A DNA stretch of 64,000 bases from Stylophora pistillata (taxonomy: Eukaryota): the NCBI RefSeq assembly GCF_002571385.2, contig NW_019218096.1, positions 111,993 to 175,992 of the forward strand. Direction: 5' to 3'. How positions within the stretch are numbered: position 1 is the stretch's first letter; the number at the start of each line of letters is the position of its first letter. Shown piece after piece: positions 2,030 to 64,000 of this stretch. Under the pieces are notes generated by a model. The model did not search any database and was not told the DNA's origin. It saw nothing but the letters and a program-made list of their open reading frames with translations. A program made the translations under genes and the position numbers.

Positions 2030-4790
2030 AAACGAATTCAACAGGAGAATTTGTACCCTGCTTGAAGAGAGCGATTCGAATTAAAGATGCAACCAAGCGT
2101 GCATGAAACATAATTTATTTAGTCCAGCGATTGCAACATGCGGCGTCATTACAAATATTTGTGTTTGTTTCAATCAGTTCTCTGCACCAAAAACCGTTGC
2201 TGTATTCTCCAGAATAAAGGGTGAGATCAAATCGTCGAGCTTTTCCCATGGAAGCTGTAATGATAAAATGATACTCATTCGCTGATAACCAACCCACTAG
2301 GCCATCCTTTGGAAATACTTATTCCATTGAGCATTGTACAGTGGTTAATTCCGTGCGCCTCACTCCTAGTGTTCCGTACAGTTCACTCACATCAATTTAT
2401 TTTTTCACTAATGTTTTGTCTTGCCCGACCGACTTCGTCGAAAAGGACTCGAAAGAATGCTCACGCTAGTTAGCTGCAGTTAACAAAATGCATTAATTGG
2501 TTTTGTCACTTTTTTTCTTTTGTTAGTGCCGAATTGGTAAATATTGCTGATCATAAAACTAACAATTTCCTTGATTATAATTAGTTTAAAAACCTATTTT
2601 CCACATATTTAGTTGCCGTTTTGTTATCGGACAGTTCAACACCGGGGGGGAAATGGCTCAGTGTTGGTGTTGAGTGCAGAAAGCAGCAACAAGGAAAAAT
2701 TATCCCATGAAAGGAGAGCGAACTTATGAGCACAAGCTAAGCTGCCAACTACCATATGCATGAGAACCAATCTCCAGGAAGATCGACAGTTATATTTACA
2801 TTTTATTGTTTAAGTAACGACACACAGGAGTACAATAAAGGCGAGAAACAATGCAAAATGAAGCAGTTGATCATTTCAAAAACTCTCGTGGCTTTTTCTA
2901 TATTTTTTTAATTACTAGAACGAAAGAACTTCTCACAGGTAACTTTTAAGTACAGATTTTCTGAAGTAAGAAATTTGGAAAAAAAATCAAAGTTTGCCAT
3001 GGTATAGTTACTAAGGTTAAAGCAAAGAATGAATGAACTCCTATAAATCTGGAATGATTTCATATGAAATGTTGACAAGTAAATATGTTCCAAAACCCAC
3101 AGAAAACCCTAACTGTAATATTTTATGATAAATGACCATAAAACAATATTTTGGCGATACTTTAACAAAGTGATAACAATTTGAAGAGAACCAATTCTTT
3201 CGTCATCATCAACATATCAACCAGTCGAGTCAAAAAATGAACAAAAACTAGGCTGAAAAACTCGAAAGATAAAACTTTAACTGCGCGAAGACGCAGAACG
3301 ATAAAAGTGGTCCATAAAACAAAACACCTGAATAATTTCATTAGAGGAGAAAAAAAAATCAGTCCTAAATCATGAAGTTCTTGTTGATCACTCTTCCCTT
3401 GACATGTAACAGCAGATAAAGTTGTTACCAACCTTTTTGCTTTTTGAAAAATAAACAAAATAGGTCAAACTACGAAATTAATGTAATCCATATACAAGAG
3501 AAAAAACTTAAAAGAAGTAGATTTCCAACTGTAAGGCACTTTTTCATTTAACTGTTGGAGTCAGTTTGAATTGTTTCATTAATTCAAGTTCCGATTACAG
3601 TTTAAAAGTATCCTCGAGCTCCTTGGCCTTTTCCCTTAGATCTTTGGCTGCTTAATGTCCTTTGTTTTTAACAAGATCCTTGATCGTAAAGCCCAGGTCT
3701 ATAGCGTCCTTTACTAAAAAGGCAGTGTTTGCGACAACAATTATGTTCTCCGGGAATTTTCCAACTGTTTTAGAAACTACTTTCACCAGATCATCTGCCG
3801 CTTGTGTTCCTGCCTTTGATGCTTCCTTTGTTGAGGTTTTTGCGCCAGCTTGAAGTACCTCATCAGATGCTTGCGTTCCTGCATTTGCTGCTCCTCCAGC
3901 ACCACATTGAAAAGCCGCTTTCGCACCCAAATTAAACACTGCTTTTTCAAGAAAAGTTTCCGCTGCTCTTTCCAGGTAGGGTATCCCCATGGAGTAAAGA
4001 ACTAATTCCCGAAGAATCATCAAACCCGACGGGAAGTCACCTTATGAGCATTAGCGAGGCCATAAATGTACATCAGTCGTACGCTTTCTTTCTAGAGTGA
4101 CCAATCATGGATCCTTTTCCTAACGACGTTGCAGTTGTCTCCGGTTTTCTTTCGAGAGTTTGTCGGCCTCCTCTATTTCCGCAGAATGACTGTCATATCT
4201 ATATTTGGCCTCCATGTTTACTAGAGCTCCAGAAAATCCAATATACTTATGGCTGCAGCACCTCCAATCATTAATGTTACAACTCCTCCTACTACACCCG
4301 CCGTGGTTCCAGAGGCATCGAACCCCTTGTAGTACCACCACGTTTGGTCAAGTCTATCAGCCATTGCTCGGAGACTCTTGCCGGTTTTTTTCCTGTTGGA
4401 AGTCAGTGCATTCGTCTCGTCTTTGAACTCTTCCCAATCTTTCCTATATTGCAGCTTCTCATCCTCAGAGAGAATATTTATCTTCTGTAGGATTTCGTCC
4501 ACCACTCTTTTTCTTTCTTTCTATGTCAAAGCAAGAAGTAGGATTTTTAAGAAATAGCAGTCGCTCATTTAAATCGGCTTGCAAGATAGATGTTACTGAC
4601 GTAATATAGATAAAAAGTCACGCATACATAACGTGGGATTACCTACTGTATTTTGGTAGAAAGAGCATTTGTAGCACAGATCCATGGACAAAAACCGAGA
4701 AAATGTTCAATAAACGGACATTTTCTATAACTCTCCTTGAAGGTGTGGGGAGATCCAAATATTAAGAGAGACTTTTTTTTAAGACCGCGT
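2030..4790. repeat. Segmental duplication unit shared with about 61150-63710 (gene plus both flanks)
   Basis: Long colinear non-coding matches, e.g. caaatcgtcgagcttttcccat and gtgcgcctcactcctagtgttccgtacagttcact; ORFs 2115-2297 and 61162-61371 are paralogous translations of this DNA. Confidence 0.9.
3595..4520 (-). pseudogene. APOL: APOL-like pseudogene (copy 1), close paralog of 62529-63434
   Basis: ORF pieces 4221-4505, 4120-4341 and 3652-4023 align to the intact copy. Lesions: +2 nt near 4240, +1 near 4150, -1 near 4025, and GAA>TAA at 3652-3654 followed by AAKDLREKAKELEDTFKL* (stop 3595-3597). Splice acceptor gacatag| at 4521-4522. Confidence 0.9.
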
Positions 4791-6004
4791 GAGAGGTGGC
4801 ACATCGACTGAAAAATGATTATCCTCATATTTAAGTCAGAGATGCCTAATAGTGAACTTAGAAACCTGGTAAGGTTTTTTTCCCAGACTTGCTTCTTTAT
4901 CCCAGAAAATTCACGAAAACTGAAACGAGCGTCGGTAGCCGTAAAATGGCGGAAATCAGTGCCCGAGTAGAGTCAGATGAACTTTGCTCATGAAAAGCGC
5001 AAAAAGAAAGAAAGCTCAAATGAATTTGACAGTTTTTTATAGGAGGGATTGAGGTATGGCTTAGGTCTAAAACAGGACCATTTCGTTTAGTTTTAACATC
5101 ACGGAACGCTTTTAAAAATCACCTATATTTCGAATTCCAAATATCGCATTTTGGAGTACATTTTCAAGTATCATTTTCACTATGCAGTATAACTCTAAAT
5201 CAGTTCAGGTTAATTTCATGATAAGTGGAAATAGTGTTGTTTTCGAGGATACAAAATTAATTTGGGGCTTTTTATTCCGCACGGAAAAACCAGGCTAAAC
5301 TTGGTGAAAAGTGCAACGTCGTCAGTTACATCACGACATTATCTAATTAGGCACCCCGTGTTTTAATCCGTAATTCCAAGCATATTTTAGAAGTTAGCAC
5401 CGTGGTCGATAAGGAAATCAATACAGCAAGCTAGCCTTGCATAGCTAACCACGGCAGATTGGTTTTTATCTCTACTTTCGTTTTAAATTCTCATCCATTT
5501 TTCATGGCGGAATTGTTTACAAAACACACTCCTTGAGCTTTGATAATTATAAAAGAAAACCTTCCAAGTTTGTATTTTGACTCACCTACGCCCATTGTGG
5601 ATATTTCATCATTTGATCCCTTACTGTTCTGAAAACAAAATAAATCTTCACATTCTTTTCAAAACTTTAATAGTTCATCGGAAGTATGCACCAATATATC
5701 CCACGTGAACAAAAGATTTTAAGTTCTGATGTACAATTGATAATCAATAATGTAATTTTTAATTCCCCATTTTCAGTTTTCCTGCTTCAATTTCATATTC
5801 CCCATTCCCTTTTTAGTGATATCGGATATAAGTGGTTTGATCACGTAAAGCAAACGTTTACTTGGAATAAAGGATATCAGTGTGAGTGCAACATATTGTC
5901 GATTTATCCACTTATGCAAATTTTTTTTCACATTTCACGTGACTTATGACGTCCTCTTTATTTATGTTTTGTTTGAGAGTTAATTTTGTTGTACTTTTTA
6001 GTAC

Positions 6005-62528: not shown

Positions 62529-63434
62529 TTACAGTTTAAAAGCATCCTCGATCTCCTTGGCCTTTTCTCTTAGATCTTTCGCCGCTTCATGTCCTTTGTT
62601 TTGAACGAGATCCTTAATCGTGAAGCCCAGGTCTATGGCGTCCTTTACCAAAAGGGCAGTGTTTACGAAAACAATTATGTTCTCCGGGAGTCTTACTACT
62701 GTTTTAGAAGCTGCTTCCGCCAGATCATCAACAGTTTGTGCTCCACCCTTTGATGCTTCTTTTGTTGAGGTTTTTGCGCCGGTTTGAATTACGTCATCAG
62801 TTGCTTGTGTTCCTGCCTGAGCTGCTCCTCCAGCACCACCTTGAAAAGCGGTTTTCGCACCCAAATTAAACACTGCTTTTTCAAGAAGAGTTATCGTTCC
62901 TTTTTCCACGGAGGGGATCCCCATGGAGTAAAGAACCAATTCCCGTAAAATCATCAAAACCTGAGGGGAAGTCACTTTATGAGCTTTAGCAAGGCCATAA
63001 ATGTACATCAGCCGTATGCTTTCTTTCTCGAGTGACCAATCACGGATCATTTTCCTCACGACGTTGTAGTTGTCTCCGGTCTCCTTCAAGAGCCTGTCGG
63101 CCTCCTCGATTTCCGCAGAATGACTGTCATATCTATACGTGGCCTCCATGTTTACTAGAGCTCCAGCAAGTCCAAAACTTATGGCTACTGCAACTCCAGT
63201 CATTAATGTTACAACTCCTCCTACAACACACGCAGTGGTTCCAGCGGCATAAGCCATCTTGTAGTCCCACCACGCTTGGTCAAGTCTATCAGCTATTGCT
63301 CGGAGTCTCCTGGCGGTTTTTTTCCCGTTGGAAGTCATCGCATCCGTCTCGTCTTTGAACTCTTCCCAATCTCTCCTGTACTGCAGCTTCTCATCCTCAG
63401 AGAGAATATTTATTTTCTCTAGGATTTCATCCAT
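62529..63434 (-). CDS. APOL: Apolipoprotein L-like protein (intact, 301 aa; main exon starts at 63452)
   Basis: RRLRAIADRLDQ followed by a Gly/Ala-rich hydrophobic hairpin, and C-terminal DAIDLGFTIKDLVQNKGHEAAKDLREKAKEIE. These parallel vertebrate APOL (RRLRALAD...; HLHEGAKSETAEELKKVAQELE). Acceptor cttcttgttttgtag| at 63453-63454. Confidence 0.85.
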   Translation of the reverse strand: MDEILEKINILSEDEKLQYRRDWEEFKDETDAMTSNGKKTARRLRAIADRLDQAWWDYKMAYAAGTTACVVGGVVTLMTGVAVAISFGLAGALVNMEATYRYDSHSAEIEEADRLLKETGDNYNVVRKMIRDWSLEKESIRLMYIYGLAKAHKVTSPQVLMILRELVLYSMGIPSVEKGTITLLEKAVFNLGAKTAFQGGAGGAAQAGTQATDDVIQTGAKTSTKEASKGGAQTVDDLAEAASKTVVRLPENIIVFVNTALLVKDAIDLGFTIKDLVQNKGHEAAKDLREKAKEIEDAFKL

Positions 63435-64000
63435 TACTCTTTCCTTTTCTTTCTACAAAACAAGAAGTCCGGATTCTTAAGAAAACAGCAGTCACTCACT
63501 TAGATCGGCTTGCAACTTAGATGTTACTGACGTAATATTGATAAAAAGTCACGCATACGTAAAGGGGATTACTTACTGTATTCAGATATGGGCGAGCAGA
63601 AAAGGCCTTTGTAGCAGAGATTGATAGACAAAAACGAGAAAATATTTAATAAACGGACATTTTCTATAGCTCTCCTCCTTGAAGGTGTGTGGAGATCTTA
63701 ATATTTAAGACGTGTCTATCAGACTTTACCAGTTACATGTGCAATATACCTGACCAAAAGCGTGACTTCCATTGCACGAATGCTGGTAACTCAACATAAA
63801 TTTAGAGGAGGGGAGGGGGGGGGGGGCTCCTATGTGCATGAGATGAGGATGTTCCCTCCTTTTTTTTTAACTGACTCAGGAAAAATGGCTAATTTCATGG
63901 AAAATATCATTCAATAATTTTCTTCAATGCAACTTTTATAGGCTCAGTAAGGTAACTCAAGTCACGCCCCTGAAATTGGCTTCATCTAGGGATTAACATT

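Follow-up and report, generated by a model that had tools for sequence, protein, structure and literature searches.

A tandem cluster of apolipoprotein L-like genes in the coral Stylophora pistillata, with one intact and expressed gene among decaying copies of the analysed window

This study describes a 64 000-nucleotide stretch of the genome of Stylophora pistillata (RefSeq assembly GCF_002571385.2, contig NW_019218096.1, positions 111993–175992 of the forward strand; hereafter the window), which holds seven genes or gene remnants of the apolipoprotein L (ApoL) type in tandem, all on the minus strand. One of them, copy 5, is the last exon of an intact gene that is transcribed and spliced, four are pseudogenized full-length copies and two are stubs retaining the conserved C-terminal end. 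The window spans about the middle third of a larger cluster of 19 such loci, which evolves through duplication and decay. As a whole, the data are explained best, and with somewhat better than even confidence, by a duplicating and decaying ApoL cluster of which the live gene would encode a secreted pore-former acting in defence or in the control of resident organisms. The identity of the genes and the architecture of the protein are the firm parts of this picture, and we hold them with high confidence.

Organization of the cluster

The sole long open frame of the family in the window, 62532–63434 on the minus strand, served as the query for a tblastn search, and its result was compared with a six-frame scan using a hidden Markov model (HMM) of the family; both returned the identical set of seven loci. 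In each of the five full copies an acceptor AG with a polypyrimidine tract stands directly upstream of the main exon, in phase 0. An initial annotation of this DNA, made from the letters alone, had proposed five full-length co-oriented paralogues and two remnants, one large coding exon behind a phase-0 acceptor in each full copy and a single lesion-free copy; all of this is recovered here, the lesion-free copy lying at 62529–63452, and the limits given there for the array, 3595 and 63452, prove to be exact exon boundaries. The host, suggested there to be possibly a coral, is indeed one.

The same annotation counted 'at least seven' genes. This is right for the window, which contains exactly seven, and is an undercount for the cluster as a whole, since an HMM scan that included the flanks of the window found 19 ApoL loci at 71–246 kb of one 387-kb scaffold, a span of about 175 kb. 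Broken copies entered the searches piece by piece or were read with an X in place of each break, and the stretches of N that represent gaps of the scaffold were left as they stand. Seventeen of the 19 loci lie on the minus strand. The main exon is intact in six (at about 71, 88, 174, 186, 188 and 209 kb), is interrupted by a single stop in four and is multiply broken or internally deleted in five, while the remaining four are C-terminal stubs or partial copies. Within the window the lesions comprise nonsense mutations, frameshifts and the insertion of a short interspersed nuclear element (SINE). The birth-and-death turnover that had been proposed for the array is therefore borne out as tandem duplication accompanied by pseudogenization through several mechanisms.

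Elsewhere in the assembly, two pairs of small contigs (C3491 and C3514; C3835 and C3891) carry identical ApoL loci, and the second pair is also identical to scaffold positions 101123–101713. These pairs are likely to be uncollapsed haplotigs, by which genome-wide copy counts would be slightly inflated.

Gene model and expression of copy 5

Copy 5 (61119–63452, minus strand) was defined from a spliced transcript contig together with its open reading frame (ORF). Its coding sequence (CDS) runs from 63452 to 62532, with the stop codon at 62531–62529, and is followed by a 3' untranslated region (UTR) of about 1.4 kb; the frame within the window is open over 301 residues, and the upstream exons are likewise intact in the genome. 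The transcript is represented by Logan contig L029, a contig of 2641 nt from a public run, which matches window positions 63453–61119 with 99.7% identity over 2335 nt. The 5' part of the contig falls on exons 1–3, which lie beyond the window at window-equivalent positions 66755–66806, 64921–65014 and 64079–64220, and L029 thus represents a spliced four-exon mRNA, which also confirms the acceptor at 63452. From the first in-frame ATG of L029 the ORF (155–1228) encodes 358 residues; it was read from the natural transcript contig, with no joining of genomic exons. The transcript region is present in runs of nine studies, and polyA RNA-seq runs labelled 'coral metagenome' contain 0.88–0.89 of its sampled words. 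Expression of at least one copy, on which the initial annotation had made its reading depend, is therefore documented by a spliced copy 5 transcript in polyA RNA-seq.

Membership of the ApoL family

The curated gathering score of the Pfam ApoL profile (PF05461) is 25.9 bits. Copies 2, 3 and 5 reach this cut-off, with 36.6 bits for copy 2 (N-terminal piece) and 37.0 bits for copy 3, and copy 4 stays just below it with 25.8 bits. Paralogues of the cluster elsewhere on the scaffold score 49–72 bits against the same profile, and 26 of 28 database homologues match it, the best with an E value of 2.8e-21, so that the proposed assignment to ApoL has withstood the profile check. The subfamily of copy 5 and the canonical subfamily are linked by a profile–profile comparison in hhalign with a probability of 100. 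Of the 30 nearest clusters of the ESM Atlas, 29 consist of ApoL-domain proteins, with nematodes, molluscs and arthropods as sources. Judged from these sequence profiles, membership of the ApoL family is sound.

Neither the family nor its occurrence in an invertebrate is new. Several GenBank and RefSeq entries of S. pistillata correspond to loci of the cluster, among them PFX20545.1 (at 80 kb), PFX20552.1 (at 204 kb) and LOC111336741 (at 71 kb), the family has already been automatically named 'Apolipoprotein L3' for S. pistillata in GenBank and UniProt, and ApoL-domain proteins are widespread among invertebrates. At the loci of PFX20545.1 and PFX20552.1 (scaffold positions 80292–81233 and 204273–205190) an in-frame stop was observed near the N-terminus, and both database models begin downstream of it; these two entries may describe truncated pseudogenes.

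Architecture of the protein

At the N-terminus of the 358-residue protein, a basic stretch precedes some 20 hydrophobic residues (Kyte–Doolittle maximum of 2.27), and the two together resemble a signal peptide; the same N-terminus recurs in several homologues and in isoform X1 of the 71-kb paralogue in RefSeq. This segment is followed by long helices, a Gly/Ala-rich hydrophobic helix-turn-helix, a disordered linker and a C-terminal helix. The hydrophobic hairpin comprises residues 116–153, with a Kyte–Doolittle maximum of 1.91; in the canonical members of the family, the motifs G-G, T-A-G-A-A-T-P and G are conserved. The disordered linker is rich in Ala, Gly, Thr and Gln and is built of repeat units of 23 residues. 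The Pocillopora orthologues, a cluster consisting of P. verrucosa LOC131784882 and relatives from the European Nucleotide Archive (P0012), contain such 23-residue units in their linkers and are 340, 363, 386, 409 and 432 residues long. The unit also occurs in copy 4, as a 69-bp repeat; as the orthologue lengths step by exactly 23 residues, the linker is polymorphic in its number of repeats. The amphipathic C-terminal helix, a leucine-zipper-like region, is conserved more strongly than any other block of the family and aligns to positions 215–292 of the 298 positions of the Pfam profile.

Searches with the profile of the canonical subfamily matched the hydrophobic head hairpins in components of bacterial α-pore-forming toxins, namely SmhB and AhlB (E values of 6e-4 and 8e-4) and Hbl-L1 (E value of 0.012), the aligned PDB chains being 6zz5_A, 6grk_A and 7nmq_A, and one member of the family matched Pfam SseC, a family of type III secretion translocators, with an E value of 3e-7. 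ClyA, PaxB and XaxA were among the fold matches, with Z scores of 6.0–6.7 that are too low to be meaningful for helical bundles. From the sequence, the hairpin match to the toxins could possibly reflect either a deep link or convergence.

Subfamilies, relatives and evolutionary rate

The tree of the paralogues contains several deep subfamilies. Copies 5, 1 and 4 group with the 71-kb locus, copy 3 groups with the loci at 80, 88 and 204 kb, and copy 2 belongs to a third group. Relatives are found in Pocillopora verrucosa, P. meandrina and Oculina patagonica, and members of the copy 5 subfamily are present in Pocillopora. Because subfamilies are common to Stylophora and Pocillopora, much of the diversification is older than Stylophora.

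Three close transcript variants of copy 5 (P0002–P0004, from contigs L047, L048 and L052) were recovered from the same study series as a transcript that is 100% identical to copy 5. Their proteins share 86–88% amino-acid identity with that of copy 5 and their exons 2–3 are 96–100% identical to those of that gene; the synonymous divergence (dS) is 0.05–0.07 and the ratio of nonsynonymous to synonymous divergence (dN/dS) is 0.80–0.97. The possibility that they are expressed versions of copy 1 was ruled out, as they are 90–92% identical to copy 5 and about 83% identical to copy 1. They are probably orthologues from divergent lineages or haplotypes of S. pistillata, and may alternatively be products of cryptic lineages or paralogues missing from the assembly. 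In the comparison of these four sequences the amino-acid changes are densest at residues 116–245, in and just after the hairpin, with 29 variable columns versus seven columns with synonymous changes alone, and the last 40 or so residues are invariant among the close variants.

Pseudogenized copies and remnants

The first pseudogene, copy 1 (main exon at 3595–4520, minus strand, located by tblastn), is the closest paralogue of copy 5, with 87.8% nucleotide identity across the exon. A nucleotide alignment places frameshifts of +2, +1 and −1 nt near 4245, 4152 and 4025, and stop codons begin at 4094 (TAG) and 3654 (TAA). The copy lies within a segmental duplicate (2138–4767, minus strand) of the region 61212–63710, detected by self-blastn at 79–84% identity, which extends from the 3' UTR through the main exon into some 250 nt of intron. 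A tblastn search with the N-terminal 51 residues found no signal-peptide exon upstream of copy 1.

Copies 2 and 3 are each interrupted by one stop. Copy 2 (13011–13961, minus strand, full main exon from its translation and the pieces matched by the HMM) has a single premature TAA at 13289–13287, at codon 225 of 316. Copy 3 (32129–33049, minus strand, full main exon from its translation) has a single premature TGA at 32809–32807, located at the conserved Gly-Gly of the hairpin. A contig of 3144 nt, taken from a separate, DNA-like run of 2024, is letter-identical to the window over 30811–33954 and contains the same stop. Three RNA runs cover copy 5 almost in full but have no contig of the copy 3 CDS, and in one of the three the 3' flank of copy 3 left only faint traces; copy 3 is near-silent.

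The main exon of copy 4 (54845–56267, minus strand, from HMM pieces and sequence) is broken by a SINE and by two stops, a TGA at 56087–56085 and a TAA near 55531–55529. It contains an in-frame coding tandem repeat with 3.1 copies of the 69-bp unit at 55035–55250. Upstream exons of this copy survive: an exon with a signal-peptide-like segment and an open frame lies at 57766–57915 on the minus strand (66% identity in a tblastn search with the N-terminal 51 residues, and also found by blastn), and a homologue of exon 2 lies at 58229–58292 on the same strand (blastn, 91% identity to positions 76–139 of transcript L029).

The two remnants retain the final 29 or so codons only. Remnant A (21361–21450, minus strand), which encodes the conserved C-terminal helix, and remnant B (47165–47251, minus strand) were both located by tblastn and correspond to HMM positions 273–301 and 271–299, respectively. 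The flank of remnant A at 21909–22376 is paralogous to 48541–49002. Since the stop of copy 3 is identical in a separate run and the divergence between paralogues ranges from 12% to more than 60%, the lesions are genuine and do not stem from noise of the assembly.

A co-duplicated promoter module

The block of copy 5 consisting of the promoter, exon 1 and the splice donor has been duplicated together, with at least five copies in the cluster. Copies are found at scaffold positions 177336–177675, 180473–180842, 191020–191641 and 232715–233726, and an orphan module lies within the window upstream of copy 3 (42085–42514, minus strand; blastn, 73% identity to the module of copy 5, with homology to exon 1 at 42112–42153). 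An alignment of the five modules revealed a shared inverted CCAAT box, an E-box and a GGGAGACTTT-like element. In the orphan module the inverted CCAAT box and the E-box are mutated or deleted, a loss that agrees with the near-silence of copy 3. A regular-expression scan of the shared module found no strict κB or interferon-stimulated response element (ISRE) consensus.

Repeats and transposon debris

The SINE within the coding exon of copy 4 (55742–56081, minus strand, 339 bp) was recognized from its recurrence across the genome: among 2500 first-look candidates, it recurs at 99–100% identity on at least 40 other contigs. These near-identical genomic copies indicate that the element is very young, and the family looks to be recently or currently active in S. 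pistillata. Motifs resembling the A-box and B-box of a tRNA can be seen by eye in its head; ARAGORN did not call it as a tRNA and it has no match in Rfam.

Several other repeats were observed in the window. A pair of inverted repeats at 24189–24522 and 26716–27048 (334 bp, 94.6% identity) is separated by about 2.2 kb and carries 42-bp tandem repeats in each arm; the ORFs between them have no match in Pfam, and the whole unit is probably a non-autonomous foldback element or an element with terminal inverted repeats. The interval between copies 1 and 2, which is the most GC-rich part of the window, holds transposon debris, with an ORF encoding a MADF domain at 7541–7960 on the plus strand and an RT_RNaseH fragment of a long terminal repeat (LTR) retroelement at 9526–9960 on the minus strand, and a minisatellite of 21.6 copies of a 14-bp unit at 11134–11434. 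Short repeats of very high copy number lie at 33926–34030 and 30600–31000, where the summed contig depth exceeds that of the adjoining sequence by factors of thousands to millions in each of the four runs examined.

Proposed function and alternative explanations

As a mechanism for the live gene, we infer that the protein would enter the secretory pathway by means of its signal-like N-terminus, and that the hydrophobic hairpin would insert into a target membrane to form an ion-conducting pore, as vertebrate APOLs do; this proposal is drawn from the family membership and the architecture. The role would then be defence against microbes or the control of intracellular residents, and the high turnover together with the near-neutral dN/dS may reflect either an arms race or relaxed constraint. 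A pore-forming role in immunity, taken by itself, is a tentative proposal to which we give somewhat less than even weight. An extended version, in which the Pocilloporidae would keep a polymorphic and fast-turnover arsenal of secreted APOL-like α-helical pore-formers with a hairpin related to that of ClyA/AhlB-type toxins, delivered into the secretory or the phagosome–symbiosome pathway to kill microbes or keep dinoflagellate symbionts in check, and in which repeat variation of the linker and diversification of the hairpin would be the footprint of an arms race, is speculative and appears unlikely.

A number of results weigh against a secreted ApoL pore-former. Copy 5 itself scores right at the Pfam cut-off, with 26.0 bits for the 301-residue ORF and 25.0–25.4 bits in longer forms, and the hairpin of its subfamily is about 13 residues shorter than that of the canonical members, which leaves it short for a pair of membrane-spanning helices. 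Run once with 28 and once with 67 sequences, AlphaFold2 gave an overall predicted local distance difference test (pLDDT) score of 55–56, with values of 64–84 for the long helices in the better model, and Foldseek against the PDB together with a wide VIA-align search returned generic helical bundles only, with a top Z score of 8.5 that is within the range of helical noise. No solved APOL structure was matched either by sequence profile (both subfamilies) or by fold (models with a pLDDT of 55–56). The match to the bacterial toxin hairpins falls within a Gly/Ala segment of low complexity and could be an effect of composition, and a dN/dS near 1 is compatible with relaxed constraint and with positive selection alike, between which four sequences cannot distinguish. 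In the literature, our searches found no paper on cnidarian APOL-like genes and only name-based mentions of ApoL.

The most serious competitor, although we regard it as rather improbable, is a housekeeping or stress-related membrane or lipid protein, involved in endomembrane dynamics, lipid handling or vesicle biology, with a turnover that amounts to neutral drift in copy number. Roles in endomembranes, lipids and vesicles have been proposed for intracellular vertebrate APOLs and APOLD1. The many pseudogenes and the dN/dS near 1 would suit weak constraint, a promoter module in which the regular-expression scan found no strict κB or ISRE consensus is in line with such a function, and authors of invertebrate transcriptome studies have interpreted ApoL matches as genes of lipid transport or metabolism, with a response to sedimentation in Porites lobata and to salinity in the oyster. 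However, these lipid annotations are based on names, and 19 diverged tandem copies, an N-terminus resembling a secretory signal and a linker with a variable number of repeats fit poorly with a housekeeping protein. The signal-peptide-like N-terminus, together with the weak resemblance to the hairpins of bacterial α-pore-forming toxins, would also suit an offensive cytolysin secreted in venom or mucus against prey or competitors; for reef corals, S. pistillata among them, hemolytic activity and a repertoire of toxins have been reported (PMC5762905), but no mention of an ApoL protein was found in the coral literature searched, and we consider this explanation quite unlikely.

A very different explanation, that the array is an artefact of the assembly in which the paralogues are uncollapsed haplotypes and the stops and frameshifts are sequencing errors, could draw on the gaps of the scaffold and on the duplicate small contigs with identical family members. 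It is largely refuted and is regarded as highly improbable: the copies in the window differ by 12% to more than 60%, far above allelic divergence, the region around the stop of copy 3 is identical in a contig of the separate 2024 run, copy 4 contains a whole SINE and copy 1 carries five separate lesions.

In conclusion, none of the papers found describes the structure of the cluster, its pseudogene content, the transcript evidence or the signal-peptide exon of the copy 5 subfamily; the contribution of this study consists of the gene model, the cluster map and the evidence of expression, and not of a new kind of system. Coral immunity and the control of symbionts are poorly understood at the level of effectors, and an expressed, fast-evolving APOL-like protein that is predicted to be secreted is a concrete candidate for such an effector. 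For work on gene turnover, the cluster provides copies that are live, dying and dead as a natural series. If the proposed pore activity is true, it would represent APOL-type membrane attack in a non-bilaterian animal.

Comparison with known systems

The entries named 'Apolipoprotein L3' or 'apolipoprotein L3-like' for S. pistillata and Pocillopora verrucosa are the same genes as those described here, but exist as names only in databases. The tripartite toxins of the ClyA superfamily (AhlB, SmhB and Hbl-L1) and SseC likewise have a Gly/Ala-rich hydrophobic hairpin whose turn carries the motif T-A-G-x-x-T-P; it is set in an elongated helical bundle, to which the coral proteins may have a counterpart. 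The likeness of the coral proteins to the ClyA-superfamily toxins is limited to about 47 low-complexity residues, and the fold scores are within helical noise; this resemblance in sequence may therefore serve as a lead on a possible mechanism and not as evidence of membership.

Unlike the vertebrate APOLs, the coral copy 5 subfamily has a marginal similarity to the ApoL profile (25–26 bits), a hairpin that is about 13 residues shorter than the canonical one and a linker of 23-residue repeats in variable number. As corals are not known to have an interferon system, the regulation of the coral genes must also differ from that of the vertebrate APOLs. Vertebrate APOL1–6 (PF05461) and the coral family nevertheless belong to the same profile family and share a hydrophobic helix-turn-helix that is followed by helices and a conserved amphipathic C-terminal helix, and both form tandem multigene clusters that contain pseudogenes and evolve fast. 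In both, a single large terminal exon, preceded by short 5' exons, contains most of the coding sequence, as in human APOL1, and the signal-like segment at the N-terminus of the coral protein parallels that of human APOL1, which is secreted and carries an N-terminal signal sequence.

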